IMG/VR virus record: IMGVR_UViG_3300024262_006558
Coordinates: 124,001-188,000 of that record
Reading direction: 5' to 3' (one strand)
Length of the DNA stretch: 64,000 nucleotides
The position numbers and the translations under genes were made by a program. Shown here in pieces: positions 1,679-41,997 of the stretch. The notes below the pieces were generated by a model. It searched no databases. It was not told the origin of the DNA and was given only the letters and a program-made list of their open reading frames with translations. Every line of letters starts with the position of its first letter. Position 1 is the first letter of the stretch.

Positions 1679-3250
1679 ATGAAGTTCAAAGAGTTAACTG
1701 AAGAAGATATATCTAAAATCAAAAAGATATACTTTGACAAGGAGATGAAATATGGAAAGAGAATTCAGATCATATCAGATTTTTTTGGAAAAGAAGAGCG
1801 ACAAACAAGAAAATGGCTAGTTAAACTAGGTATTAAAGAAAAAAAGGATGTAGATGAGCCAGAAGACTTTAAAAAAGCGAAAGGTAAACAAACAGATACT
1901 TCCAAAAAGAGATTTATAGTAACTTGGGCACAGAACGCCACCTCTATTCATCACGAATTCTTTCACTTAATAGAACATTACGCAAAAGATATAGATGCTG
2001 CAGTTCACGTAATTGCTGGAAGATATAGAAACCCAACCTCTTTATGGTCTCAAAACAGCGAGAGCGATGAATGGTGGGCTGATGAGGTTCTACCTTATTT
2101 AGACGCTGCTAGACATCCTGTGCATAAATATTGTCAAGTCTTATCTGATGTTAAGATATCTCCAACAGCAGTTAATCCAATGTCTGGATTAAATGGCCTA
2201 ACAGGACAGCAATCATGCATACTTGGTCATCCAAGAGTTCAAATGGAATCATTACCTTCTTTGAAAGGCGATTTCCCTAAATTGATGTTAACTACTGGAG
2301 CTTGTACATTAAAAAATTACACAGATTCTAAATCGGGCAAGAAAGGCGAATTTCACCACACTCTTGGTTTTGCTATAGTAGAAATTAAAGATGATGAAAC
2401 TTTCTTCGTAAGGCAAGTTACAGCAGACGATGACGGCAGTTTCATTGATTTCAATAGAAAACTTTACATCGATGAAGATGGGGAAGCTCAAGTTGAAATA
2501 GTTAAAGAAGTAGAGGCAGCTATCATGGGTGACCTTCACCTTGGGAAACATGATCCAGAAGTTTTAAAAGCAACTCAAAAGTTGTTTAAAAAACTTTCTC
2601 CTAAAAGAACTTTTATTCACGATATTTTTGATGGGGAATCCATTTCTCACCATGAAGAAAAGAATCCGATATTACAATATCAAAAAGAGGTAGAGAATCG
2701 AAATTCACTGAAGAAGGAAATCGATTACATGGTTGACTGGGCTAAAGATTGGAAGAAATACAACTTGATTGTAGTTCGTAGTAATCATGATGACTTTGTC
2801 GATCGATGGATTATAAATTCTGACTGGAAAAGAAATGTGAAAAACTCTATGGAATATATGGAGTATGCACAAGTTCTTTTGCAAGGAGAAAAAAGAGGAG
2901 TTATACCTTACGTGCTTGAGAAAAACTTTGGAGAAGATATACTTTGTCTTGGGAGAGACGAGTCATACAAAGTTGGGCCTTGGGAATTAGGGTATCATGG
3001 AGACCAGGGTTCTAATGGCTCAAGAGGTTCTCTTGAGCAGTTTAGAAAGCTAAACAGCAAAGTTGTTGTTGGCCACTACCACACTCCAGGCAGGAAAGAT
3101 GGAGCATTAGCTGTTGGTACTACTACATTCTTAAGAATTGGTTATAACCAAGGAGCTAGTGGTTGGCTAAATAGTCACGTTCTTATTCATGAGAATATGA
3201 AAGCTCAACATATACATATAATCAATGGAGAATTCACAACATTAAAATAA
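1679..3250 (+). CDS. Calcineurin-like metallophosphoesterase/nuclease, T5 A1-like, with N-terminal helical extension
   Basis: Metal motifs GDLH, HDIFDG, SNHD, YHGD and GHYH. The TTGACT..NY..K.EFHH block resembles phage A1-type proteins. Confidence 0.7.
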   Translation: MKFKELTEEDISKIKKIYFDKEMKYGKRIQIISDFFGKEERQTRKWLVKLGIKEKKDVDEPEDFKKAKGKQTDTSKKRFIVTWAQNATSIHHEFFHLIEHYAKDIDAAVHVIAGRYRNPTSLWSQNSESDEWWADEVLPYLDAARHPVHKYCQVLSDVKISPTAVNPMSGLNGLTGQQSCILGHPRVQMESLPSLKGDFPKLMLTTGACTLKNYTDSKSGKKGEFHHTLGFAIVEIKDDETFFVRQVTADDDGSFIDFNRKLYIDEDGEAQVEIVKEVEAAIMGDLHLGKHDPEVLKATQKLFKKLSPKRTFIHDIFDGESISHHEEKNPILQYQKEVENRNSLKKEIDYMVDWAKDWKKYNLIVVRSNHDDFVDRWIINSDWKRNVKNSMEYMEYAQVLLQGEKRGVIPYVLEKNFGEDILCLGRDESYKVGPWELGYHGDQGSNGSRGSLEQFRKLNSKVVVGHYHTPGRKDGALAVGTTTFLRIGYNQGASGWLNSHVLIHENMKAQHIHIINGEFTTLK

Positions 3251-4166: not shown

Positions 4167-4535
4167 ATGAAAAGTATAAAACCAGGATCAGTCTATGTAG
4201 CAGGATCAATTCATGGAACAAAAGATCAAGAGATTGTGTTCATGGACAAGCAGACTAACAGGCAATTCCATGAAGAAAAGGCTGGCTTAGAATTACCCGA
4301 CTATTTCTTTGAAACTATAGATGTTGATCCTGATGATTATGCTGTGACTCAAGATGGAACCTCAAATGAGGAATTGTTGAAGATTTTAATCGATAGAACT
4401 GAAATCCTTAATGAGAATGTTGAGTGTTCTGAAAACACTGATGCTATCTATCACATGCAACAAGCTCTTGACGCGTTCAGAAGCAGAACTTCTGATAGAA
4501 GATCACGTGGAGTACAAAGCACTACTGTGGCTTAA
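4167..4535 (+). CDS. Tad1-like anti-defence (immune-signal sponge) protein
   Basis: DGTSNEELLKILIDR...CSENTDAIYHMQQALDAFRSRTSDRRSRGVQST aligns by eye with the Tad1 helical hairpin (G...LLEIVRDRL...[33 protein letters not shown]). Confidence 0.72.
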   Translation: MKSIKPGSVYVAGSIHGTKDQEIVFMDKQTNRQFHEEKAGLELPDYFFETIDVDPDDYAVTQDGTSNEELLKILIDRTEILNENVECSENTDAIYHMQQALDAFRSRTSDRRSRGVQSTTVA

Positions 4536-4569: not shown

Positions 4570-4600
4570 AAAAAAAGGGGAACATTTGTTCCCCTTTTTT
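4570..4600. terminator. Intrinsic (probably bidirectional) terminator
   Basis: AAAAAAAGGGGAACA-TT-TGTTCCCCTTTTTT perfect hairpin with A/T tracts on either side. Confidence 0.85.
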
Positions 4601-4696: not shown

Positions 4697-5974
4697 ATGG
4701 CGGAAGTTGTAGAAAAAACAGAAACCACACAAGAAGGTCAAAATACTGTTAAGACACCTGCTCAGGTGTTGGAAGCTTTGGAAGGGAACAAATTTAATAT
4801 ATATTTCTTCTCCCCAGGCATAGACGGACCTAGTGGTGGAATGGGCGTGTTATTTAAACAAGCTTTAATACTTAAAGAGGCTGGATATAATGTAACAATA
4901 TTATATCAACCAACAGTTGATAAAAGAGCTACAGCTCAATTTAGACAAGCTGCTGCTCAGCAAGGTAAGACGGATGATCAAACAATCATTTTCTTTAAAC
5001 ATAATCCAAGATGGATGGAGTTTAGTCTTTTTGAAACCGTAGAGAATGAAAAAGGAGTTAAAGAAGAAAGAAGTATTGTAGATTTCATCCCATTAGGTGA
5101 AGGGACTATGAGATTCAGCGATGGGACAGTTGAGGAAGCTCAAAACCTAAACCTTAACACTGAAGATTTCTTAATCATACCTGAGGGTTTCCCAAACATC
5201 ATGCAGGAAACAATGCATGCTCCTTGTAAAAGAATTGTACTGGCTCAAAGTTGGATTTATATCCTTAATGCTTTAGCTCCAGGGCAAAAATGGAATACGT
5301 TTGGTATCACTGATGCTATATCTGTTTCAGACGGAATTACAGAATATCTATCTTCAATAATGCCTCAAGTAAAAGTGAAGCAATACTCACAAAGCATTAA
5401 TAGAGAAATATTTAATGCACCAGATAATCTTAGTGATAAATTCCCTATGATAGCTTACTCAGCAGGTAGAGGGCAAGATTCTGAAATGAAGATTAACAAC
5501 GTCATTAGAAACTTTCAAGAGTGGTATCCACAATACAAATTTTTCAGATTCATGAAGTTGAATGATCTTTCTCGAAAAGAGTATGCTGAAAGACTTAAAA
5601 GCTGTTGTATTGCATTATACACAGATGATATTGCTGGATTTGGAACATTACCTTTAGAGGCGATGGCTAGCGGAACTCACGTAGTAGGATGGACTCCGTT
5701 TGGAGGAAAAGAATACATTAACAAAGCTGAAGGAGAAGAATTACACAACGGATTCTGGGCTAATAATGGGGATGTTTTCAACTTATCCGAAGTGTTAGGT
5801 GTCGCTGTTGACAAATGGGTTAACGGAGAGCTGGATGGAGAAGAGCTTCAGGAAGCATATGATAAAACTCTTAGTAGATATACTGATGAGAAAGAAAACT
5901 CAAGAATTTTAGATCTTTATAACGAATACAAAACTGAAAGAATAAATGAAATTAAAGGACTTCAAGCAAAGTAA
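4697..5974 (+). CDS. GT-B (GT4-like) glycosyltransferase
   Basis: PSGGMGVLFKQALILKEAGYNV N-terminal motif, IIPE, and C-terminal GFGTLPLEAMASGTHVVG. Confidence 0.85.
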   Translation: MAEVVEKTETTQEGQNTVKTPAQVLEALEGNKFNIYFFSPGIDGPSGGMGVLFKQALILKEAGYNVTILYQPTVDKRATAQFRQAAAQQGKTDDQTIIFFKHNPRWMEFSLFETVENEKGVKEERSIVDFIPLGEGTMRFSDGTVEEAQNLNLNTEDFLIIPEGFPNIMQETMHAPCKRIVLAQSWIYILNALAPGQKWNTFGITDAISVSDGITEYLSSIMPQVKVKQYSQSINREIFNAPDNLSDKFPMIAYSAGRGQDSEMKINNVIRNFQEWYPQYKFFRFMKLNDLSRKEYAERLKSCCIALYTDDIAGFGTLPLEAMASGTHVVGWTPFGGKEYINKAEGEELHNGFWANNGDVFNLSEVLGVAVDKWVNGELDGEELQEAYDKTLSRYTDEKENSRILDLYNEYKTERINEIKGLQAK

Positions 5975-16318: not shown

Positions 16319-16530
16319 GAATACCTATAGCATCTAAAAATATAAAATCTGCAGCCTATGATCAACCCAATCTAACTGCAGAGATAGAATTCATTAATGG
16401 CAATGTATACCAATACTACCCGTTTTATGAAAATCAATGGGATGAATTAATTAAATCTGCAAGTAAAGGTAATTGGTTTAACAAAAATGTTAGATCTAAC
16501 AAGTCTATTGTTTGTAAAAAGATTAAATAA
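16312..16530 (+). CDS. KTSC domain protein
   Basis: SKNIKSAAYD...EIEFINGNVYQY...SASKGNWFNKNVR. Confidence 0.9.
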   Translation: MVRIPIASKNIKSAAYDQPNLTAEIEFINGNVYQYYPFYENQWDELIKSASKGNWFNKNVRSNKSIVCKKIK

Positions 16531-19500
16531 TGAACGAAAAGATATTACTAGAGGAAACACGTTACACAACCAGGTTTACAGCTTTTGCAACAAATATAGA
16601 TGAGAATTCATCTACATTTCAGTCTGGAGTTGATGCTGGAATGGTTCCTGCCTATCTTACATTTGACCCTAATGGAATTGCTCAAAACATTGTTAAATTT
16701 TCTGGAGGAACAATTCTATATAGAACTAATAAAAATACTTTTATACCAATAGATGATGCATCCATAGACTATGTCTCTGGTTATACATGGTCAACTGATT
16801 TACCTAGTCAATTACCTCCAGCTAATAAAGATAATCCAGGAATTGGAAGTAAGTATTATAACAAATTTCATAAAGTAGCAGATTATCTATCAAGCGGCAG
16901 ATCCCAAACTCATGTTATCAGAGAAGAAGTTCCAACTCAAGACTATATTGTTAACATAGGTTTAGAAAGGTCATTCGATGCACTGGACACGCTGAGTGTG
17001 TACAATAGTATGGAGAATGGTATACCTAGCCAAGAGTCTAATACTGGCGTTGTATTTGGAAGGTTGGTAGCAAATCAAAAAATCATAGACAGAAATGGTA
17101 ATGCGGTTAAAATACCATTATCGAATGTCCCCATAGGTATATTCCAAGCTTCTGAGGAGTTCCCAACAGCGAACTCCACAGATGATAATGGTAACAGGAT
17201 TCAAATGAATTTTTTAAACAACGACCCTGAAGCTAATGAGCAATTTAATTATGTAATTGCTCATGAGGGAACAGATCTTTACTCTACAAACAGGTCAGAT
17301 GTTAAAAGTAAATCTTATGAATTCGATCAGCAATTTCTTTCTAGCAGTGACAATCTAGAGAGTATGCCTGAGCATTATAAGATAGTTACTAAAACAAATG
17401 ACAACGGAGAATTTATTTTATATGACGTACCTACCAGTACTCAAATTTTATTCTTTGAAGTAGATCTTCTAAAGCAAGGGATGACCAAGGAAGAAGTTAA
17501 GTTAAATTTTTTCCCTTACCCTACAGTAAGCGAGCCTAATGTAGATAGTGTACCACATTTTTTCTTCAGACAATTTCCATTGGATGTTCTACCTGCATGG
17601 GGAGATCTGCAAACTGGATATACTGAAGTAAATGTAAGCGTTAATCTAGATCTCAGGAAATGGGCTACTTACTTTTTTCCACCAGTATCTTTAGATGGGC
17701 AAACTTTTAAAGAATTACAAGACGAGGGAGTTGTAGCTAAGATGGAGATTGAGATTAGAGATATGACTAGTCCAGACTTTAGTTTAACACCAGTTTCGCT
17801 TGTTGAAATAGCAGATCCTTTAAATAGAAATACAACACAAGAATTGGATTGGAACAATGAATTGGTTCAATCTAAAGGGGTAGCTGAATTTAGGGAAGAT
17901 GACTTTTCTATACTTAAGCTACCAGCTAACATCTATAATCCTAACGGGATTAGCACTTCTGAATACGATAAAAAAAACATAGCAGAAGCTCAGCGATTTG
18001 AATATTCTCAAACTAAAGGCTCCTGGCATGCTGGTTACCAGATGAATGTTAAAACAAATATTAATGAAGAATGGTTTAGAGCTACTGGGTTAGATAATAC
18101 GCCGAGACCTCCAATAAGAAGAACTTTTAGCATTCCTGAAAACTTGAATAGAGCTCATATAAATTTAATAAGAAGAATAAGGCCTGATGTTGACCGCGCT
18201 TTCCCAGCAGATATTAATGTGGCTAGATGGTATATTTACCAAGGCGTAAAGGAGTTTGATGAGGCAACTATTGAACTAATAGCTACACAGCCTATTCAAA
18301 CAGATTTAAATGTAGCAGCAGCAAATTATATAAGAGTAGTTAGACCTGATATTAATAGCGCTACAACAGATGGAGTAAAATTATGGTATGTCATCGATGG
18401 TATAAAAGAGTTAAGTGATGAGAATTTGAATAGAATTAGGGAATTAGCTGTAACTACAGACAGTTTAACTAGAGACCATTTTCATTTAAATAGAAACAAT
18501 TCAGAGTCTGTAAAAAATACAGAAGCTGAAGGTGTTATAAATTTTTTCCCTTATGAAAGGCCGTGGGATGAATTATATCCAGAGCCAATAAAAATACCTA
18601 GAGTCCCAAGAGTTAGAAACCCTAGATGGAGAGGGGCATATAATGGAGACCCTAATATTTATATACCTAAATATTTAGACGGTGATCTAATAGGTCTCCC
18701 TGACGCTAATGTGGAAGCTGGAGGCTGGGGCTTGGAATTAAAGCCAGTAACTGGAACTAAATATGCGGGCTTATTTTCAAAAAGAGCTACTAAAAATTTT
18801 GTATACAAATATGAGGGTAACGCGTCAAGCACGCTTACATCATACGCAAATGGATACAGCCCTACACAGGATATTGAAGCCCTCTCGTCAGTTTTAGATG
18901 GGGAAAACTACCAAAGAGTAGAATGTGGACATGCCTATTTCATGAGAGTTGAAGGTTGGCCTGGAGCTTTGCATGGCCCCGTTTTTGATAGGATGTTTGC
19001 CGATAATTCCTATGGATCCTTAAACCGTATTGTAGGTTCATATCGTAGTCCAGACTTAAAAACTAGTGTTAAAGCTGGAAGTGATTCACCGAAAAAAGAA
19101 GGCGACATTCAAATTTTTAAAATTGTAAATCCTGATCCAGAAAACATATATAGCCAAGACCCTATAGTGACGCCTAGTTTTATAACAATAGGCACTGAGC
19201 AGATATGGAGAAGAAGGGATGAGGATAATGACAAACTGAAGATGGGGTACGCAATAAATAATGAAAACGGACAAGGTAAAGCGGCTTACATGTACCCTCA
19301 CTTTTCTGACAAGGGAAACTTTTTCTCTAGATTCACTATAGAAATACAAAATGTAGGTCAAAAAACAGTTAGAGACCCATTTAGAGAGGGGGCTAAGCTA
19401 AGATCTGGCGAATCTTCTGAATTCCTAGTTCAAATGGAATCAAATACCACTATAGGGGATGTAGATTTTCAATTTTCAGCTCGTGACAACAGAATGAGGT

Positions 19501-19940
19501 TAACTAATATAAACATTACACTTGATGGTAATGATGATTTTGATCCTGGAGATTTTAGCTTTAAAAAAGCTAAATATAACATTATTTTTAAAAATTTCTC
19601 TAATGAAGGCAAAGATGCTAACTTAGATAAAAGTAGACATGTTTTAAATATTGACGCGCCATCTCAGCTTGAAACCCCTGTAAAATACTTCCTAAATCAA
19701 GGGATAGATTCTGTTCAGACTAACTTTGACGATGGCAAGGATAGTCATTGTTCTGACAAGTGGAAGTCGACACAGAACGTGTATATACATGGGATTATTT
19801 TAGGAGCTGGGTCTGGATCAGAGAAAGAGACTGGAATTTTTTTAACTGATAGTTTATCTGAAACCACTTGCGGTAGAGGTAAATTAATTAGCACAACATT
19901 TGGGGACACCTTGAGAAACATAGGATGGAGAATTAAGTAA
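16530..19940 (+). CDS. Large virion (baseplate/tail) protein with prealbumin-like fold segment
   Basis: GVVFGRL...IPLSNVPIGIF...TKTNDNGEFILYDVP; TAATG-coupled tail operon. Confidence 0.6.
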   Translation: MNEKILLEETRYTTRFTAFATNIDENSSTFQSGVDAGMVPAYLTFDPNGIAQNIVKFSGGTILYRTNKNTFIPIDDASIDYVSGYTWSTDLPSQLPPANKDNPGIGSKYYNKFHKVADYLSSGRSQTHVIREEVPTQDYIVNIGLERSFDALDTLSVYNSMENGIPSQESNTGVVFGRLVANQKIIDRNGNAVKIPLSNVPIGIFQASEEFPTANSTDDNGNRIQMNFLNNDPEANEQFNYVIAHEGTDLYSTNRSDVKSKSYEFDQQFLSSSDNLESMPEHYKIVTKTNDNGEFILYDVPTSTQILFFEVDLLKQGMTKEEVKLNFFPYPTVSEPNVDSVPHFFFRQFPLDVLPAWGDLQTGYTEVNVSVNLDLRKWATYFFPPVSLDGQTFKELQDEGVVAKMEIEIRDMTSPDFSLTPVSLVEIADPLNRNTTQELDWNNELVQSKGVAEFREDDFSILKLPANIYNPNGISTSEYDKKNIAEAQRFEYSQTKGSWHAGYQMNVKTNINEEWFRATGLDNTPRPPIRRTFSIPENLNRAHINLIRRIRPDVDRAFPADINVARWYIYQGVKEFDEATIELIATQPIQTDLNVAAANYIRVVRPDINSATTDGVKLWYVIDGIKELSDENLNRIRELAVTTDSLTRDHFHLNRNNSESVKNTEAEGVINFFPYERPWDELYPEPIKIPRVPRVRNPRWRGAYNGDPNIYIPKYLDGDLIGLPDANVEAGGWGLELKPVTGTKYAGLFSKRATKNFVYKYEGNASSTLTSYANGYSPTQDIEALSSVLDGENYQRVECGHAYFMRVEGWPGALHGPVFDRMFADNSYGSLNRIVGSYRSPDLKTSVKAGSDSPKKEGDIQIFKIVNPDPENIYSQDPIVTPSFITIGTEQIWRRRDEDNDKLKMGYAINNENGQGKAAYMYPHFSDKGNFFSRFTIEIQNVGQKTVRDPFREGAKLRSGESSEFLVQMESNTTIGDVDFQFSARDNRMRLTNINITLDGNDDFDPGDFSFKKAKYNIIFKNFSNEGKDANLDKSRHVLNIDAPSQLETPVKYFLNQGIDSVQTNFDDGKDSHCSDKWKSTQNVYIHGIILGAGSGSEKETGIFLTDSLSETTCGRGKLISTTFGDTLRNIGWRIK

Positions 19941-22918
19941 TGATAGATAAAAGACAAATACTGCTGCCATCGAAAGATGTTATAACTAGAGGTAAAGAAG
20001 ATCTATACATAAATGTAGACTTGGACAAAGCCTATAATGAAATAAAAGCGTTTAAATACAATAACGTTTTTGACATAGGTAAGATGTTTGAAAACGAAAG
20101 AAATGAGTCTAGAAATTTCTTTGTGTACGGGTCTGTAGATTCAGTGTTTACAAACTGTGATGAATTAGAGTTAGATATATATTTCCCAGTCAATGATATT
20201 GACGTTCAAGACGAAAATGCTGGCGTTTCATTCATTAGAGACAGGAGCTTGATAGAACTTTCAAATGGTGTTATACTACAGTATTTCGATACAATTGTCA
20301 CTGGAAAAGCGTCATATGGATCTGGTAATATTTTTGGTAACAAGAAAGGGGTTTATTCAATTGCTTTAGAAAATTTTAATAGAAAATATGTGTACGTAGT
20401 CTACTCTAGAACGAATAGAACTATTTTAAATACAAACTCTCTTTTTTCTAACGGATTAGTAGGTTGGAATAACACGTCTTCCGCGCCAGAATCTTCAAAG
20501 TGGATTTCAGACAAAAACAAAAGAAGAGTCTTTGTAAGAAACAGTGGAGTCTCCACTTCTTCCTATAATTTATGGCCAGAAGGTACCACTCAATTTTCAG
20601 ATATACCTACCATATATAAGTTTGCTGCCGATGTTCTAGCGGATACTAAATATCCAATAAAAGTGACATTCAATGCAATGTTTTTTGATGGATCCACGCA
20701 AGGTACAATTGGGGAGGTGGAAGTTTTTCCAAATAGCAAAAATGAAACCATATTTGTAGAAGGTAATTCATACCCTTTGTTAGCTTCAGCATTAATAAGC
20801 ACTGTTGGCTTATCTATTCTTTTTGACCCTAGAGAATCTAAAGAGTCTATCGTATATTTGGATAGATATAAAATAAGCGTGTCAGAAAATCAATTAGACA
20901 TAAGCGATAAAATAGAAAACAACTCATTTCATCAAGGGTTGGATTACTGGGAGCAAACAGATGGTATATCCGAGTGGAATTATATCTCTACAGAAAACAC
21001 TATTTTCAGCAGAAAAGATACTCCAGTTGGAGAGGTTGGTAGACCAAGGCTTTTGAGTCAAAATTTTAATGTGAAAAAAGGTATTAGATATATTTTAACA
21101 GTTGGTTTAGAAAGATCTACGCCTCCAGAAAAAATGAGTATACTTTTTTTTCTAGGAAATGACGATAACCCAAAAAGTCAATTAATTACCAGGCCAGCTG
21201 TGGATGGACCCTTAACTACCCCTTCAGCAGTTGTCGATTTTATAGCTGAAGGTGATTACACAAAATTAACTTTAGAGGTATTAATAGCGTCAGACAGAGC
21301 TCCTAATGATTTTATCTATTTAAATGACATCACAATAGTTCCAAGAACTCAATTACTTGAAAGTGAAGATATCGTTGTGGACGAAGTTCAAACTTTTCAG
21401 AGTCAATTAGTTTTTAATGATGATGAAGGGGAGTTTATAAAATATGGAAGCGATTCCCTTCAGATTTCTGATGACGGAAGTGTGGATGTAGTGGAAAATG
21501 ATTTTCCCTTTTTTTATAACACTCATTGGATAAAAAACAATATAGAAATTAATAGAGTTATTACCAGAAGCGCTTCTTTAGATCCAGAAGCCTCTAGCTT
21601 AAGAGAAGGTGAGTCGGTTAATATAAACATTTCTTTAAACAAGCCTAGCGCTCTAGGGGTAGAGCAGGCAACAATTTTAGTTGAGTCAGAAACGGCTGTT
21701 GAAGGTGTAGATTATGAATATTCCCCAAAGACTATACAGTGGAATAAGGGGGAAACTGTAAAAACTGTTACCTTAAAAACTAAGGTAAACCCAGAAACTA
21801 GTCCTTTACAGCAAATAAAGATATCACTTACGAATCAGGTTAGATTAGGCTTTTCAAACAATACTCAAACTATAATTGATCTATCTGATGCAAATGTCTC
21901 AAGGTACACCAAAATATCTATACCGTCAGTATATAAAAACCTAAAGTCATTTGGGCAAAGAGTAAGCACTAATAATGATGTGCAGAAAATTGATTTAGCT
22001 AGAAAGAATTCTATTTTTAGAAACGGGGCAGAATTTGACGGTGTGCCTGAAGAATTTTATTCCACAGATTCATTTACGATAAAAATAACAAACAAAGGAG
22101 AGCCAGTTAATATGGATCCAATCCCAGGATTAACCACTTCACCAACCCTTCTTGGGATTGGTGAATCACTAGAAGGTCTCATATCGCCTATTTTTATAGG
22201 AACTTCAGAGGTTAATGAATATACAATAACTGTAAACCCTAATCCAGGAGGAGAGTCTTGCGCAGTGGATATAGACGGTCATATTTATCTTAATATAGAC
22301 ACTATAACAGATTTAATAGAAGCGGTTCAAGGGGATAATACTGAAAAAGGTTTTTCATTAGAAACAATAAGTGAGACTGCGGTTAAGATAACAGCATCTT
22401 CTCCAGGCTTTTTCATTAGCATATCTAAATTTGACCCTAGCTCATTAATGGATATACAAGAGACAAGCGCATTTGTTTACCTGCCTCAAAGAAAGCTTTC
22501 TTTAAATTTGAAAGCGAATCGTTTTAATTCTGAGAAGATAGATTATAATATAGAGCTTTCTAAACCAGGGTTTAAAACAATAAGCGTTGATACTGGTCAA
22601 TTGGACGCCAAAGAAAATGGGTTTGATGAATACTTCCTAGTTACAAGCTTTAGTAACATGAGAAATTTCCTAGACAGAAGCAGTTGTATATCAGTTGATG
22701 GTTCAGGCGTTGATGGCAATGTAGTTTTTAATGGCGCCCTATTTATATCAGATAGCATAGGTGACAATGGAAAACCATTGAACTTAACCACGTTTGGAAC
22801 ATCTATAAATGGATCATCTAGCATTTTCTCCTTAACTGAAGCCGTTGTAGTTGAGTGTACTAAACAAGAATCTAATGATAACAAATTAGGCCCTTATAAT
22901 AGCATTTTTGTAGAATAA
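19940..22918 (+). CDS. Virion protein with two CBM-like domains and a Calx-beta-like domain
   Basis: NSLFSNGLVGW and ENNSFHQGLDYW...YLNDITI (CBM-like); EGESVNINISL...TAVEGVDY...WNKGETVKTV (Calx-beta). Confidence 0.6.
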   Translation: MIDKRQILLPSKDVITRGKEDLYINVDLDKAYNEIKAFKYNNVFDIGKMFENERNESRNFFVYGSVDSVFTNCDELELDIYFPVNDIDVQDENAGVSFIRDRSLIELSNGVILQYFDTIVTGKASYGSGNIFGNKKGVYSIALENFNRKYVYVVYSRTNRTILNTNSLFSNGLVGWNNTSSAPESSKWISDKNKRRVFVRNSGVSTSSYNLWPEGTTQFSDIPTIYKFAADVLADTKYPIKVTFNAMFFDGSTQGTIGEVEVFPNSKNETIFVEGNSYPLLASALISTVGLSILFDPRESKESIVYLDRYKISVSENQLDISDKIENNSFHQGLDYWEQTDGISEWNYISTENTIFSRKDTPVGEVGRPRLLSQNFNVKKGIRYILTVGLERSTPPEKMSILFFLGNDDNPKSQLITRPAVDGPLTTPSAVVDFIAEGDYTKLTLEVLIASDRAPNDFIYLNDITIVPRTQLLESEDIVVDEVQTFQSQLVFNDDEGEFIKYGSDSLQISDDGSVDVVENDFPFFYNTHWIKNNIEINRVITRSASLDPEASSLREGESVNINISLNKPSALGVEQATILVESETAVEGVDYEYSPKTIQWNKGETVKTVTLKTKVNPETSPLQQIKISLTNQVRLGFSNNTQTIIDLSDANVSRYTKISIPSVYKNLKSFGQRVSTNNDVQKIDLARKNSIFRNGAEFDGVPEEFYSTDSFTIKITNKGEPVNMDPIPGLTTSPTLLGIGESLEGLISPIFIGTSEVNEYTITVNPNPGGESCAVDIDGHIYLNIDTITDLIEAVQGDNTEKGFSLETISETAVKITASSPGFFISISKFDPSSLMDIQETSAFVYLPQRKLSLNLKANRFNSEKIDYNIELSKPGFKTISVDTGQLDAKENGFDEYFLVTSFSNMRNFLDRSSCISVDGSGVDGNVVFNGALFISDSIGDNGKPLNLTTFGTSINGSSSIFSLTEAVVVECTKQESNDNKLGPYNSIFVE

Positions 22919-28622: not shown

Positions 28623-30287
28623 TTAAACCCCCATTAAATCACCTTGTTTATCACCCCATGTGTCATAAGTATTACCCCATAGTATTTCAATATCCACATT
28701 GTTCACCAAACTGTTGTTAAGAGTTATATTTTGTGAATTAGTTTTATAGCCTCTATAATCTACAAATAGCACATAAGACCCTCTTGTTAAATCTGAGAAA
28801 TAATAATTACCAACTAAATCTGTTGTTGCAGATAAAGTAGACCCTTCTTCATTTATAAGTTGAACCGTAGCCCCTGTTACTATACTACCAGTTACTAGAC
28901 CGCTTATAATATAAGATCCAGAATTCTCAACTGTTATACTTGGAGGCGTGACAAGTTCTGGTAATTCAGAGCTGAAAGGTGAATCAGTCTGAGATCTGAC
29001 AAATACAGCAGCAGGCTGCGACTGAGTCACGCCTGTTAAATTATCAGAAAAACTTATAATCTGTTGTTCAACTCCGAATATATTCCTAATTAACTTAACG
29101 TTACCAATTCTATATATAAAGCTAGAAGCTGTTTTTAAGGGTATCTCAGCCCTTTGAATACCATCCGTCAACTCTTTGTCTATATTGTACTTGAAAGTGG
29201 TCCCAGAGAACGCTGTATCATTTATATTATAAGTTACCTCTACCATATATCTATCCCCATCAGATACGTTTGAGAAATATAATTGAGGAGAGAATGTGCT
29301 TATAGGCCCAGAAATTAAAGGTCTCTCGAATTCAGGCTTGTTAGGAACAGTAAAATAAGTGAAAAAATACCCCCTAACAGTGACTCCACTAAAAACGCCC
29401 GACTCTATAGTTGTTGGGGTGGTGCTTGTTTGAAATCTTGTTGTCCTACTGTAATCATAATCATAAGCTAACGCATCCCCATCTGGCAATCCAGCAAAGA
29501 CGTTTTGAGATACGCTCCCTGCATCCTCTGGATTATCCCTGCCTGAAACAAATAATCTTTGTTCATCACTATATCCTTTAGGGTCATTTTGATCAAACGT
29601 GAAAGATGTATCAACAAAGTACTGACTTTTATCTTCAAATAATATTCTTTTATAAGGCTCAGAAGTATAGTCCCCATCTCCAAAAGTAGTTGCGCTAAAA
29701 GGCAATTTAGTGAATTGTCCTGGATAGAAATCATAAACATAACTTGTAAAACCAGAAGTTCCTGAGGTAATTTTAATATATGGAGTATCTAAAAATTGCT
29801 GTAAAGCATCAAATGTGACAATGTCAACTTTTTGATACTGATCTGTTGTAGCGCTCTTTTTTAATTTCCTAGAAACAGACCTAACAGTCTTGATACCATT
29901 TTCAATAATAATCTCTTCCTCTTCCACTGTATCACTATCCACATTTAGTGAAGAGTTTATTTTTGTGAAATCAGGATTATAAGCTTTAAAATCCTCATAC
30001 TTTAACTTGTATATGTCATGAACAATCTCTGTGCTACCACTAAAACTGCTTGTATTGGCTGAGAAATTGAATCTGATAAAAGGAGTGTTTTGACTAGTAA
30101 AAACAGCGCTATGGTCTTGGCCATAATAATTTAGAGTTCCCCCAAAAGTGGTAAACTCAGGCAGGTCAAATATAAAAGGTTCCACGTACGGATACCCAGG
30201 GTCAACAAGAGCATTGCTCCAAAATGTTTGTATGGTAGAATTTTGATCCCCAGTAGATCTTCTTTGTATTGGACTTCCTGACAGCAT
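28623..30287 (-). CDS. Virion protein with C-terminal carboxypeptidase-regulatory-like (prealbumin) domain
   Basis: ISGLV..GATVQL...TTDLVGNYYFSDLTRGSYVLFVDYRGY. Confidence 0.65.
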   Translation of the reverse strand: MLSGSPIQRRSTGDQNSTIQTFWSNALVDPGYPYVEPFIFDLPEFTTFGGTLNYYGQDHSAVFTSQNTPFIRFNFSANTSSFSGSTEIVHDIYKLKYEDFKAYNPDFTKINSSLNVDSDTVEEEEIIIENGIKTVRSVSRKLKKSATTDQYQKVDIVTFDALQQFLDTPYIKITSGTSGFTSYVYDFYPGQFTKLPFSATTFGDGDYTSEPYKRILFEDKSQYFVDTSFTFDQNDPKGYSDEQRLFVSGRDNPEDAGSVSQNVFAGLPDGDALAYDYDYSRTTRFQTSTTPTTIESGVFSGVTVRGYFFTYFTVPNKPEFERPLISGPISTFSPQLYFSNVSDGDRYMVEVTYNINDTAFSGTTFKYNIDKELTDGIQRAEIPLKTASSFIYRIGNVKLIRNIFGVEQQIISFSDNLTGVTQSQPAAVFVRSQTDSPFSSELPELVTPPSITVENSGSYIISGLVTGSIVTGATVQLINEEGSTLSATTDLVGNYYFSDLTRGSYVLFVDYRGYKTNSQNITLNNSLVNNVDIEILWGNTYDTWGDKQGDLMGV

Positions 30288-37573: not shown

Positions 37574-38542
37574 ATGACTGAAAAAGATCAAATCGTCCTC
37601 TCCATAGTAGTCAGTGTTCTAGGTGAACATAGGAGGACGAGTGAAGATAATGCTCAAAAGTATTTTAACTGTCGCAGTAAAAAATGCATGCATGATAGAG
37701 ATAAGTTTAATTTATCATACAATGCTGATTCTAAAATTTTTAGATGTTGGAAATGCGAAGTAAGAGGAAGCGTTCACACTTTAACTAGAATGTTTGGGGG
37801 AACAAATGATGTTGAAAAACTTAAATTAATACTTCCTTATATAGAGCCTAGAGTCAGCTTATTTGCTAAGCCTAAAATAGACTATGATTCACTTGTTTGC
37901 GATCTTCCTAGCGAATACAAACCTCTTGTAGTTCCGCAAGATTCATTTAAGTATAGAAACGCTCTAGATTACGTTATGAACGTTAGAAAGGTTTCTATGG
38001 AGCAGATCGATAAATATAATATTGGATATACTGAGGATGGGCCTAAGAAATTAAGAATAATAATACCTTCATATAATGTTAGAGGTAATGTGAATTATTT
38101 TGAAGCTAGAGCCTATTTTGATAAGTTAAATCAAACTTACATGAAACCAGATTTCCCAGATAAAGATGACATCATATTTAATGAGAAATTCATAAACTGG
38201 GATCTACCAATATTTTTGGTAGAAGGAGTTTTCGATGCATTAAGATTGCCCAACGCTATCCCAATACTCGGAAAGCATGTTCCATCTTATTTAGTGGCTA
38301 AACTTATGAAGTATAAGCCTAGAATTATATTATGTCTAGATGAAGACGCTGTTACTAAGGCGGAGGAAATATATAACACTCTTTCATCTTTAGGTTTTGA
38401 TGTTTATTTTATAGACATGACAGGTAAAGGTGATGTTTCTAAAATATACGAAGATCAAGGGGTTAATGGGATAAAATGTTTATTATCCTCAATAAGAAAA
38501 CTTACTTTTGAGTTTTTTATAGCAAAAAAATTAAAATTATGA
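37574..38542 (+). CDS. DNA primase (Zn-binding + TOPRIM)
   Basis: C..C and FRCWKC Zn ligands, IIIPSY..YFEAR, LVEGVFDAL and LCLDED. Confidence 0.9.
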   Translation: MTEKDQIVLSIVVSVLGEHRRTSEDNAQKYFNCRSKKCMHDRDKFNLSYNADSKIFRCWKCEVRGSVHTLTRMFGGTNDVEKLKLILPYIEPRVSLFAKPKIDYDSLVCDLPSEYKPLVVPQDSFKYRNALDYVMNVRKVSMEQIDKYNIGYTEDGPKKLRIIIPSYNVRGNVNYFEARAYFDKLNQTYMKPDFPDKDDIIFNEKFINWDLPIFLVEGVFDALRLPNAIPILGKHVPSYLVAKLMKYKPRIILCLDEDAVTKAEEIYNTLSSLGFDVYFIDMTGKGDVSKIYEDQGVNGIKCLLSSIRKLTFEFFIAKKLKL

Positions 38543-41500
38543 GCAAGATAGCGCATTTAGCAGATATTCAAATTAGATTAGGAAGCCGACATCAAGAATA
38601 CAGACAAGTCTTTGAAAGAACTTACGAGGATTTGAAGATGCAGAAACCTAAGCGAATATACCTTGCTGGAGATATAAATCACAACAAAGCTGACATGTCT
38701 CCAAATGGAATAGATTTACTAGCTGAATTCTTTAGAGAACTTTCAAAAATTGCTCCAGTAGATGTTATCCCAGGTAATCATGATGTTAATCTAGCTCAAA
38801 TAGCTCAAGGAGACTCTTTGCAGAGCATTATACAATTGATGGATAACGGTAAAGTAGTTACAAACAATAATAAAAAAGATTTTGAAGGTAGTTTCTATGA
38901 AAAGGAAAATGGTAAATATCAAGTTTACTATTACCCTGAAAGCGGATTATACAATATCGACGAAGAGATAGTCTATGGACATTTTTCTTGTTTAGATAAT
39001 GAATTAATCACAATTAAAAGGAAAGATCCAAATAAAAAATACATTGCTTTCTACCATGGAGCCGTTCATGGTAGCATGAATGACAATGGGTATCAGAATA
39101 ATGATCCATCATTATATAGTGTCAGCGTCTTTAATGATTTTGATATGGTTATGATGGGTGACATACACGAGCATCAGGCTTTTAGAGATGATTTCAGCAT
39201 GGCTTATGCTGGCAGTTTAATTCAGCAGGGTTATGGGGAAGGGATTGAAAAAGGATACCTTATATGGGATCTGGATACGAATCAGTTTAGAAACCAATAT
39301 ATACTTAATGATTTTGGATGGGCCAAGGTCACAATCAGTCAAGGTGAGTCATGGGAAGATAGGTTGGAGTTTGTAAAATTCAGTAATAACAAGAAAAAGA
39401 CTAAGATTTATGTAGAGTGGGAAGATTTTGAGGAAAATATCTCAGTAGAGAAAAGTAATCAAATAATGAAATACATAAAATCTACTTATGGATGTGAAGT
39501 AGTTAATGTAATCCCTAAAACAATATATAAAAACACGCAACTGCAGTTAGATAGCGATAAATCTAAAGAGTTGATGAAACGCCAGGATATAGATATTTTC
39601 AAAGATTATTTGATTGAAAACAAATCTACATTCGACTATACTGATGATCTCTTTGACGAGTTATTAAAACTCTTCAAAGAAGTGGATACAACTTTAGAAA
39701 TAAAAGATAGAGAGTTTAGGGAGATATTATGGGACGTTAAAGAATTACAGGTTTCAAATCTGTTTTCATACCCATCAACCCCTAAGACATTTAACTTTGA
39801 TGACCTAGCAGGTATAACAGGTATATTCGGGGAAAACTATTGCGGTAAAACAAATATGATCAAATGCTTGGTATGGGTTCTTTTCCAACAAATATTAGAT
39901 GGTGGAGACACTAAAAAGCTAGTAAACATATACACTGAAAGCGACAGAGGGTGGGCTCAAGCAATTGTTACTATCGATGGATCTTTGTATAAGATATATA
40001 GAGAAGTGACTAATAGAGTCATCGCAAAAGGGAAGAAAGAAGGGGAGATAGACACTAAATATAAAACTAAATTTGAAATATGGAACGAAGATAAAGAGGA
40101 GTGGGAAGATGAGGTAAATGACAAGAAAACAAATGAGCAAAAAGCCGTCAAAGAACTTATTGAAAATTCACTAGGAGAATACAAAGATTTTACGAAAACA
40201 TCCCTTCAATCTCAAAGCGGTCAAGAGAACTACATCAACGCGGATCAGCAGCAGAGAAATACGCTTATTAGAAAGTTTATGGATCTTGAAAGTTATGATG
40301 ATAGATATAACTTTATTAATGATAGCAAGATGAAAGCTATTCTTAAAAAAAGAAAAGAACTAGGAGATCTTGAAGAGCTTCATGACAAAATAAAAGAAAT
40401 AGATGATGCGGTAGCTGAAGAGAATAAGAAACTAACTCAACTGAATTCTGAAAAATCTAAAGCGAATGATTCTCTAGAAGAAATAAACTCTAAAATACTA
40501 GATCTTACTGGAAAATTAGAAAAGGTTCAGCCTACTATTGAAAACAGTGTGGGCACAATCAATGAGAAACTAACTAAAGAAAGAACACTATTCAAACAAA
40601 ATGGAGCAGAATACAAAGAGCTAGACGCGTGGTTAAGTGAAAATCTGAAGAGAGAGATGTCGGAGAATATCTCTGAAAGCGCAAGTGATCTTAGTCAATC
40701 GATTGCAAACATAAATGTAAAGTTCAAGACAGGGAAAGAAGAGTATCAGGGAATAAACGCTTGGCTAAAGGAGTTTTCTAAGATTACACCTGAGGATCCA
40801 AAGCCAATTCAAGCATTACTAGAAGATGGTAGAGCAAAGGAAAAAGAATTACGAGACCTCATAGCTACATATTTAGGCAAAGAATGCCCTACTTGTGGAA
40901 CTGTAAGTAAAAAGCCTCAACCTGACAAAGAGAAGGGGTGTGTGGAAAAAATTTCCATTATTATAGATGAGAGATCTGTCTTGGAAAATAAACTTTCCAC
41001 CATCGATAGTTTAATTAAAAGGAATGCTACTTTTGATCAGAAATCGTTAAGACTTTCTGAGCTTAAGAACTCTTTACTTGAAATGAAAACTTTGAAAGAG
41101 GAATGTGTTCGTAAATTAGAAGTCTTGGAGAAATCTAGAGACATTCTAGAGCACAATTCCATGGTTGATGAGAAGAATAAAAGAAGAAGCGTGTTAAAAC
41201 AGCTTTTAGAATCATCTAAGAATCAAATCGAAGAATGGAAGAAGATGATAGTGACCGTGCAAGACAATCAAGTTCATATAGAAAAGAATGCTAAGATTCA
41301 AAGCGAGATATCTAAATTGAAAGAAATTTATATCGATAGTAAAGAGTTGCATGATAGTTTAGGTAGACAAATCAGCTTGACTTTAGGGGATATAACTTTC
41401 CAAGAAAAAAACTCTAAACAATTTGAAGATAAACTAAAAGAAATTAAGAATTGTGATTTAGATTTCAAGAAATATTCTATATTCTTACAAGCTGTACACA

Positions 41501-41997
41501 GAGATGGTATTCCAGCAAAAATAATTAAGAAGCGCTTACCAATTGTCAACAGTAAAATAAAAAGTATAATCAGAGATTTAGTCCAATTTAATATTGAGTT
41601 AGAAATGTTGCCTAATGGTAATATACATGAGTTTTATTACTACAACCACGATCAAAGTGACAAGTTACCACTTACCACAGCATCTGGTTCACAAAAGTTT
41701 ATGGCTAATCTAGCAATTAAAGATGCAATGCATTTCGCCACGTATCTCCCAAAGCCCTCAATGTGTATTGTGGATGAAGGGTTTGATGTTTTAGCTCCAC
41801 AATTGAAGATGAAAATGAATGATATATTTCAATACTGGAAGAACAAATATAAAAACGTTTTCATTGTAACACATGATGGTTTAATTAAAGACTTTGTGGA
41901 AAATGTAATTACAGTTTACAGGACTCAAGACGATATACCTGAATCGTATAAAGACAAATACGCAGAAGCGTGGACCACTGGAATAAATATTACATAA
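38539..41997 (+). CDS. Fused SbcD-SbcC (Mre11-Rad50 / gp47-gp46) recombination nuclease-ATPase
   Basis: N-terminal HLADIQ, AGDI, PGNHD, GDIH and YAGS; then Walker A GENYCGKT, coiled coil with CPTC zinc hook, signature ASGSQ, Walker B IVDEGF and IVTH. Confidence 0.93.
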   Translation: MSKIAHLADIQIRLGSRHQEYRQVFERTYEDLKMQKPKRIYLAGDINHNKADMSPNGIDLLAEFFRELSKIAPVDVIPGNHDVNLAQIAQGDSLQSIIQLMDNGKVVTNNNKKDFEGSFYEKENGKYQVYYYPESGLYNIDEEIVYGHFSCLDNELITIKRKDPNKKYIAFYHGAVHGSMNDNGYQNNDPSLYSVSVFNDFDMVMMGDIHEHQAFRDDFSMAYAGSLIQQGYGEGIEKGYLIWDLDTNQFRNQYILNDFGWAKVTISQGESWEDRLEFVKFSNNKKKTKIYVEWEDFEENISVEKSNQIMKYIKSTYGCEVVNVIPKTIYKNTQLQLDSDKSKELMKRQDIDIFKDYLIENKSTFDYTDDLFDELLKLFKEVDTTLEIKDREFREILWDVKELQVSNLFSYPSTPKTFNFDDLAGITGIFGENYCGKTNMIKCLVWVLFQQILDGGDTKKLVNIYTESDRGWAQAIVTIDGSLYKIYREVTNRVIAKGKKEGEIDTKYKTKFEIWNEDKEEWEDEVNDKKTNEQKAVKELIENSLGEYKDFTKTSLQSQSGQENYINADQQQRNTLIRKFMDLESYDDRYNFINDSKMKAILKKRKELGDLEELHDKIKEIDDAVAEENKKLTQLNSEKSKANDSLEEINSKILDLTGKLEKVQPTIENSVGTINEKLTKERTLFKQNGAEYKELDAWLSENLKREMSENISESASDLSQSIANINVKFKTGKEEYQGINAWLKEFSKITPEDPKPIQALLEDGRAKEKELRDLIATYLGKECPTCGTVSKKPQPDKEKGCVEKISIIIDERSVLENKLSTIDSLIKRNATFDQKSLRLSELKNSLLEMKTLKEECVRKLEVLEKSRDILEHNSMVDEKNKRRSVLKQLLESSKNQIEEWKKMIVTVQDNQVHIEKNAKIQSEISKLKEIYIDSKELHDSLGRQISLTLGDITFQEKNSKQFEDKLKEIKNCDLDFKKYSIFLQAVHRDGIPAKIIKKRLPIVNSKIKSIIRDLVQFNIELEMLPNGNIHEFYYYNHDQSDKLPLTTASGSQKFMANLAIKDAMHFATYLPKPSMCIVDEGFDVLAPQLKMKMNDIFQYWKNKYKNVFIVTHDGLIKDFVENVITVYRTQDDIPESYKDKYAEAWTTGINIT

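Follow-up and report, generated by a model that had tools for sequence, protein, structure and literature searches.

The 122-residue protein P0001, encoded in the genome of a very large, uncultivated phage, is almost certainly a homologue of the immune-signal sponge Tad1 in which the loop equivalent to the ligand-covering lid holds a conserved insertion that is predicted to fold into two helices. Tad1, Tad2, and Acb2 are sponge proteins by which phages counter nucleotide-based immunity (Thoeris, CBASS, and Pycsar). The Tad1 family itself is well known. New are a small clade whose conserved, structured insertion falls precisely within the lid loop, the loss in this clade of the residues of the cyclic-trinucleotide site, and a fixed syntenic position within a lineage of very large, almost unannotatable phages. 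Very probably, P0001 belongs among the nucleotide sponges, whatever its ligand, and it is the product of a credible antidefense gene for which we infer ligand binding and inhibition of a host defense.

The Gene and Its Transcription Unit

The window analyzed here is a stretch of 64,000 nucleotides, corresponding to bases 124001–188000 of an IMG/VR virus record of 388,594 bp that is rated complete by CheckV. The GC content is about 34–35%. The open reading frame of P0001 starts with ATG on the plus strand and, with its stop codon, covers exactly the positions 4167–4535 that an earlier sequence-only reading had given for it (Table 1). The gene is single-copy in the 388,594-bp record, and no Tad1-like paralogue was found in the same record.

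Table 1. Coordinates of the Tad1-like gene, its parts, and its neighbors in the window
Feature	Position	Strand	Basis
Tad1-like P0001 coding sequence	4167..4535	+	list of open reading frames; five orthologues with the same start
N-terminal antiparallel β-sheet part, residues 1–28	4167..4250	+	AlphaFold2 model, alignment to the Tad1 sheet
Acidic clade-specific insertion in the β4–α1 lid loop and strand β5, residues 29–62	4251..4352	+	loop lengths, AlphaFold2 model
Tad1-type two-helix hairpin, residues 63–120; putative pocket L81, N90, R107, R111	4353..4526	+	phmmer, PHROG 2428
Intrinsic terminator closing the transcription unit	4571..4600	+	stem, T-run, folding energy
T5 pre-early A1 homologue (DNA transfer protein/metallophosphoesterase)	1679..3250	+	phrog_1745, tblastn
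Conserved 280-aa gene, directly upstream of P0001	3257..4099	+	synteny across related contigs
Glycosyltransferase gene, next after the terminator	4697-5974		

P0001 is the final gene of a co-oriented, tightly spaced run. The strong terminator noted behind it in the sequence-only reading consists of a 13-bp stem with a 4-nt loop, followed by a T-run, and has a minimum free energy of −23.2 kcal/mol (z −4.8). An equivalent stem-loop with a T-run follows each orthologue (contigs L006, L007, and L009). Since the stems differ in sequence and keep the same place, the terminator itself is conserved. Upstream of the start codon the DNA is A-rich and devoid of a Shine–Dalgarno motif, and the same holds for the orthologues. 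The presence of an A1-like gene ahead, within a co-oriented unit that ends at a conserved terminator, would fit early expression of P0001. No RNA run with the locus was found; the sole public run containing it is a DNA run labeled as subsurface metagenome, probably from the sample in which the record originated. A megablast search with 4 kb around the gene gave no match in 50,697 phage records, and hence this phage has no close sequenced relative among them.

Homology to Tad1

The best family match of P0001 is PHROG 2428 (E = 9e-18, residues 62–120). A phmmer search of the PDB sequences with P0001 alone finds CmTad1 (8kbb_A, E = 2.9e-4, residues 63–120) and, at an E-value of about 0.1, CbTad1. 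A profile built from 138 relatives recovers CmTad1 (8kbb, 3.7e-19), CbTad1 (7.5e-16), and PhiKZ gp184 (2.2e-10), and its alignment to solved Tad1 extends from the GHxY strand through the C-terminus. Matches to phages by tblastn are confined to the hairpin, and none covers the N-terminal half. The hairpin carries the C-terminal Tad1 pattern that had been recognized by eye, with LL.I..DR at residues 70–77, C.EN at 87–90, A93, H96, AL at 100–101, R107..DR111, and R114.V116..T119, and the PHROG and 8kbb E-values place this likeness far beyond chance. The spacing of one element must be corrected: AL....R should allow for one more residue, as there are five between L101 and R107. Matches in BFVD are phage proteins named either "ABC transporter ATPase" or "Acb2/Tad1 hairpin domain-containing"; the former name is also carried by the solved CbTad1 entry 7uav.

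Pfam does not detect this relationship. P0001 has no match at E ≤ 1 or E ≤ 10, be it as the whole protein or as the hairpin alone, and two orthologues scanned in the same way gave no relevant match. A six-frame genome search with PF24729 (Acb2_Tad1_hairpin) missed the P0001 reading frame, and among the relatives just the one with 75% identity has a precomputed match, which is designated "weak". The model does score the Tad1 of phage SPG24 (33.2 bits versus a cutoff of 27); it misses three out of four control Tad1-like phage proteins and matches 1 of 16 relatives in alignment A2. Because most of the controls fail as well, we conclude that PF24729 is narrow, and since the clade is invisible to it, surveys that use this model under-count such sponges. 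NCBIfam found nothing in P0001 and nothing in a control Tad1, as this collection contains no Tad1 model.

The relatives of P0001 fall into two N-terminal types, a canonical FQxGP type of about 115–125 residues and a more numerous short type of about 100 residues that begins with MKVLxPGHxYxL...QxIQFIxK. Profile alignment equates IKFQKG of CbTad1 with lqFikk of the short type and with IVFMDK of P0001 (residues 23–28). Hence, the two types are homologous throughout, and the N-terminus of P0001 is of the short type.

An exhaustive HMMER search yielded 596 representatives at E ≤ 1e-3, whereas a word-index protein search returned two relatives of P0001 only. Five orthologues share the full architecture including the insertion: P0002 (75% identity), P0004 (60%), P0005 (44%), P0003 (39%), and P0018 (38%). 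Together with P0001 they constitute the six-member clade discussed below; the sequences that carry them are JGI and ENA metagenome contigs and contigs assembled by Logan from public runs. The dN/dS ratio between P0001 and its 60% orthologue on contig L006 is 0.13, and more distant pairs give 0.27–0.52, with dS saturated in all of these comparisons. P0001 is a real gene under purifying selection.

Predicted Fold and Dimer

An AlphaFold2 model of P0001, built with the alignment of 138 sequences, reaches a pLDDT of 96.7 and a pTM of 0.80, with pLDDT values of 96–97 for residues 1–28. The model contains a five-stranded sheet (strands 2–5, 9–12, 21–25, 27–30, and 58–62), two helices in the insertion (31–39 and 45–50), and the two helices of the hairpin (67–84 and 88–114). 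Over the whole chain it is thus predicted to adopt the arrangement of Tad1, an antiparallel sheet packed on a helical hairpin. A separate model of the 38%-identical orthologue (pLDDT 93.2) shows the same elements, including both insertion helices, and adds a small β-hairpin formed by 14 extra residues. The best 20 Foldseek matches in the PDB are all Tad1 (CbTad1 with a TM-score of 0.61 and a probability of 1.0), and nothing related follows. VIA-align superimposes the model on CbTad1 and CmTad1 with Z-scores of 8.3–9.6 and an rmsd of 1.8–2.6 Å over 89–96 residues. The aligned span pairs residues 1–122 of the model with residues 16–124 of CbTad1; it follows that the approximately 26 unaligned residues are the insertion and that the first 15 or so residues of CbTad1 have no counterpart. 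The expectations of the sequence-only reading, a Tad1 fold and a match to the family by sequence search, are borne out by these models and by the E-values given above.

The possibility that P0001 is a chance reading frame, or a gene in decay whose helical motif is fortuitous, can be dismissed. Its absence from Pfam is all that speaks for it. This reading is refuted by profile E-values down to 3.7e-19, five orthologues with the entire architecture, dN/dS ratios of 0.13–0.5, the confidence of the model (pLDDT 96.7), and the conserved terminator.

P0001 is also predicted to form a homodimer, with an ipSAE of 0.68 compared to 0.01 for the best control. Among proteins with solved structures, 20 of 30 homo-pairs and 1 of 23 single chains reach this mark; these counts are only a rough calibration, because a custom alignment was used for P0001, and the result may partly reflect the memory of the model for solved Tad1 complexes. 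At least 90% of the contacts are shared between the dimer runs, and the pLDDT of the partner chain is 83 or higher. The predicted interface comprises residues 1–26, 60–81, and 87–110 and therefore involves part of the N-terminal sheet. Residues 80–81 and 89–90 of one copy touch residues 106–107 and 110 of the other. Accordingly, the model places L81 and N90 beside R107 and R111 of the partner, as in Tad1. The insertion region (residues 27–59) lies outside the confident interface.

The Lid Insertion

The sequence-only reading had pointed to an acidic insertion of about 20–25 residues between the anchor motifs QEIVF (residues 21–25) and DGTSNE (residues 63–68). We measured this loop as the stretch between the F25 and G64 columns in the 138 aligned relatives. 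It comprises 38 residues in P0001 and 38–53 in the clade, compared to a median of 17 for the 89 short Tad1-like proteins and of 11 for the 43 canonical ones of the FQxGP type. The insertion is real and the earlier estimate of its length correct, as P0001 exceeds these medians by 21–27 residues. It is also acidic, with 9 Asp or Glu versus 2 Lys or Arg in residues 29–62. P0001 has the same total length as canonical Tad1, so that the insertion could have been illusory; profile alignment and the loop-length tallies rule this out, since the canonical proteins have a longer N-terminus and a shorter loop.

The description of this region as an extra loop is right with regard to the insertion but not with regard to its nature: a folded two-helix element is predicted instead of a loose loop. 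Residues 29–48, with the motif NRxFHExxAGxxLPxYFF, are the best-conserved segment of the protein, 10 of 20 positions being invariant in the six-member clade. The remaining segments have 5 invariant positions of 28, none of 14 (residues 49–62), 5 of 22, and 4 of 38. Constraint on P0001 is thus strongest in the helical half of the insertion; the acidic tail of the insertion varies in sequence and in length across the clade. No instance of the motif was found among the short Tad1-like relatives outside the clade. Profile alignment to CbTad1 identifies P0001 residues 29–64, the site of the insertion, as the β4–α1 loop. In CbTad1 this loop, together with R57, shuts over gcADPR (Li et al., bioRxiv 10.1101/2023.11.15.567273). 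This equivalence justifies the earlier proposal that the insertion lies near the predicted pocket.

Ligand Pocket and Probable Function

Several residues that determine ligand binding by Tad1 have been identified in the study cited above. The double substitutions F82A/N92A and R109A/R113A abolish binding of gcADPR and 2′,3′-cGAMP by CbTad1, residues 116–122 form a second lid, and the guanine of 2′,3′-cGAMP is held in part by Q8 and L13. The phosphates of cyclic trinucleotides are bound by R88 and T95 of CmTad1 (R90 and T97 in CbTad1) at the trimer-of-dimers interface, and the cyclic-dinucleotide ranges of CbTad1 and CmTad1 differ via loops around the pocket (Li et al., bioRxiv 10.1101/2023.11.15.567273).

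HMMER alignments equate CbTad1 F82, N92, R109, and R113 with L81, N90, R107, and R111 of P0001. The last three of these are present in all six clade members and are invariant or nearly so across the 138 aligned relatives, with R107 and R111 found in at least 131 of the 132 relatives outside the clade; position 81 is occupied by Leu or Tyr within the clade. The C-terminal RGV..T tail, the equivalent of the second lid, is also present. To judge from these alignments, the residues of the pocket for gcADPR and cyclic dinucleotides are kept in P0001. The trinucleotide site, in contrast, is lost. R88 and T95 of CmTad1 are replaced by S88 and Y95, and position 88 is Asp, Ser, or Glu in all six clade members. 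At the hexamer interface, P0001 has H96, Q99, D102, A103, and S106 where CmTad1 has K96, E99, M102, W103, and K106; Q98 is the only interface residue that the two proteins have in common. In addition, P0001 has no counterpart of the N-terminal segment, the first 15 or so residues, that contains Q8 and L13 in CbTad1.

With slightly better than even confidence, we favor the interpretation that P0001 is a Tad1-family sponge with a remodeled lid and a gcADPR-like ligand. The protein would act as a homodimer or possibly as a higher oligomer. The turn of the hairpin (L81 and N90) of one chain would face the end of helix 2 (R107 and R111) of the other to form the pocket. This pocket may sequester an ADP-ribose-derived signal, such as the gcADPR (1″-2′ or 1″-3′ cADPR) made by Thoeris TIR proteins, and thereby keep the host effector off. 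The folded, acidic two-helix insertion would take the place of the short mobile lid and change the shape of the pocket at its entrance or along its wall; a rigid lid of this kind would probably alter which ligands fit. Without the trinucleotide site, P0001 should bind a narrower or a shifted range of ligands. Several observations sit uneasily with this interpretation: it is not obvious how an acidic element would be of benefit beside a pocket that takes up an anionic ligand, PF24729 gives P0001 no score, and both the trinucleotide residues and the N-terminal segment with Q8 and L13 are missing.

The same insertion may also indicate that P0001 is a sponge with the Tad1 fold whose ligand is not gcADPR. 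In this case, the remodeled lid would redirect the pocket, or add a second one, toward a different immune signal, for example, a cyclic dinucleotide or mononucleotide, His-ADPR, or N7-cADPR, possibly with the help of the conserved residues F34, H35, Y46, F47, and F48. There are precedents, as sponge families do shift their specificity via loops and insertions: Acb2 homologues that bind 3′cADPR use an added β-strand, Tad2 binds cyclic dinucleotides with an insertion domain of 35–41 residues, and the two solved Tad1 proteins themselves differ through their pocket loops. The position of the most conserved motif of the clade in the lid loop points in the same direction. On the other hand, the contacts to the common adenosine-phosphate moiety are unchanged, so that an ADPR-type ligand remains the simplest expectation, and the insertion lies outside the predicted dimer interface, its position near the pocket being deduced from alignment. 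We give this reading a lesser, though by no means negligible, chance.

Conserved Gene Order and Neighboring Genes

Every related contig has the same gene order, in which an A1-like gene (about 520 aa), a gene for about 250–280 residues, the Tad1-like gene, and a glycosyltransferase gene follow each other, and the Tad1-like gene keeps its place down to 38% identity. Such a fixed position is commoner for a core gene than for a mobile antidefense gene and thus counts against the sponge for a gcADPR-like ligand that we favor. It could instead mean that the Tad1 fold has no sponge role in these phages and serves a lineage-specific core function, for example, as a partner of the A1-like or the 280-aa protein or as a virion component. 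Relatives of the hairpin are indeed annotated as "structural protein" in Lactococcus phage 1706 and Klebsiella phage Eowyn, and PhiKZ gp184 has the domain in a capsid protein. However, gp184 works as a Tad1 in its own right and is packaged and injected, which means that association with the virion is no argument against sponge function. P0001 also has no N-terminal extension for anchoring in the capsid, and its invariant pocket residues would not be needed for a purely structural role. We therefore regard a function outside of signal sequestration as quite improbable.

A further idea, speculative and in our view unlikely, accepts both peculiarities of the clade. The two-helix insertion would be a specificity module on the Tad1 lid for a ligand unlike that of any characterized Tad1, either another nucleotide or one held at a second site as in Tad2, and the clade would also be unusual in that a sponge has become a fixed, syntenic part of the core genome in a lineage of jumbo phages.

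The first of the conserved neighbors, located in the middle of the 388-kb genome, matches phrog_1745 with an E-value of 4e-153. It is a full-length homologue of T5 A1, which is encoded on the first-step-transfer DNA (31.5% identity by tblastn, E = 2e-50), and its best matches are in Maribacter and Flavobacterium phages (about 46%). These matches to phages of Flavobacteriia and the A-rich upstream regions without Shine–Dalgarno motifs weakly hint at a host from the Bacteroidota. The 280-aa protein has no match in Pfam, PHROG, or NCBIfam. A gene for 246–282 residues is found between the A1-like and Tad1-like genes in every related contig, and its product could be a functional partner of either protein.

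Around the Tad1-like gene lies a cluster of sugar-nucleotide and glycosyltransferase genes (1–1608 and 4697–5974 in the window; contigs L007 and L009). This cluster comprises dehydratases or epimerases, a DegT aminotransferase and a cupin isomerase in the relatives, and a GT1 glycosyltransferase downstream, and it may serve the modification of DNA or of a surface glycan. One of its genes, a GDP-mannose 4,6-dehydratase/epimerase-like reading frame on the plus strand (1–1608), is split. In the 510-aa reading frame from position 76 the two Pfam halves cover residues 2–73 and 401–503, with about 330 unmatched residues between them, which looks like the insertion of an intein or a homing endonuclease. 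On contig L009, a separate LAGLIDADG/NUMOD3 reading frame is located just upstream of an unbroken epimerase gene of 347 aa. A second possible intein was noted in a 985-aa SNF2-family helicase (47175–50132, plus strand), which has a LAGLIDADG_3 domain at residues 392–455, at the start of the SNF2 domain.

Other parts of the window show how very little of this phage lineage current families cover. Between 11176 and 34826, eight of nine scanned reading frames (554–1136 aa) have no Pfam match, the exception being 28623–30287 with carboxypeptidase-regulatory-like domains. The only two reading frames that were also compared to PHROG (16530–19940 and 19940–22918) have no match there either. The protein of 1152 aa encoded at 38539–41997 (plus strand) has matches to SbcC-like as well as SbcD-like PHROGs and may therefore be an SbcCD-type nuclease that is fused or very large. 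Finally, in the Aeromonas jumbo phage D3 (L004, 1372–2191), a Tad1-like gene is directly followed by a gene for a putative RNA ligase/cyclic nucleotide phosphodiesterase-like protein; this pair may combine a sponge with a signal-cleaving enzyme.

Comparison with Known Systems

Recent work indicates that the specificity of sponges shifts through small structural additions. The clade of P0001 can be seen as a natural experiment on this theme, in which the core for binding phosphate and adenine would be kept, the trinucleotide site lost, and the mobile lid turned into a conserved folded element. The ligand of this clade would reveal to what extent ligand choice in Tad1 depends on the lid loop.

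The closest known system is Tad1 itself (CbTad1, 7UAV/7UAW/8SMD/8KBE-F; CmTad1, 8KBB-D). P0001 resembles these proteins in the N-terminal sheet and the two-helix hairpin (Z up to 9.6), in the pocket residues (here L81, N90, R107, and R111), in the RGV..T tail, and in a predicted dimer with the same cross-protomer pocket. It differs from them by its lid loop of 38 residues with two helices instead of about 11 residues, by S88 and Y95 in place of R88 and T95, by most of the hexamer-interface residues, and by a score below the PF24729 threshold; the first 15 or so residues of CbTad1, with Q8 and L13, are missing. The short PHROG 2428 proteins of about 100 aa (MKVLxPGHxYxL...QxIQFIxK...DGTTNEEVL), which make up the bulk of the 596 representatives, have the same start, strand pattern, and hairpin as P0001, but their loops have a median length of 17 residues. 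A survey from 2025 (Hadary et al.) counted 1,587 non-redundant Tad1 homologues in IMG/VR v3 and may include the present clade.

Acb2 (T4 Vs.4 and PaMx33 Acb2) belongs to the same hairpin superfamily (Acb2_Tad1_hairpin) and acts as a sponge, with some members binding 3′cADPR. Unlike the P0001 model with its five-stranded sheet, the Acb2 protomer consists of two long helices and a short N-terminal helix without a sheet. No Acb2 chain appeared in the PDB sequence matches (E ≤ 10), in the profile search, or among the Foldseek and VIA-align matches listed. Tad2 (HgmTad2 and SptTad2) offers an analogy only, in that an insertion of 35–41 residues adds ligand specificity to a sponge; its fold (DUF2829, PF11195) is unrelated, and PF11195 found no match in P0001 or in the whole virus record.

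PhiKZ gp184 (8Y6V chain I) is the sole antidefense protein described so far in jumbo phages. Like P0001, it brings a Tad1 domain into a jumbo phage (profile E = 2.2e-10, gp184 residues 153–227). Gp184 is a protein of 230 aa with an N-terminal capsid anchor that is removed by the head protease, whereas P0001 is a stand-alone protein of 122 aa encoded in a non-structural operon. P0001 would thus add to the jumbo phages, beside gp184, a second and differently organized Tad1.
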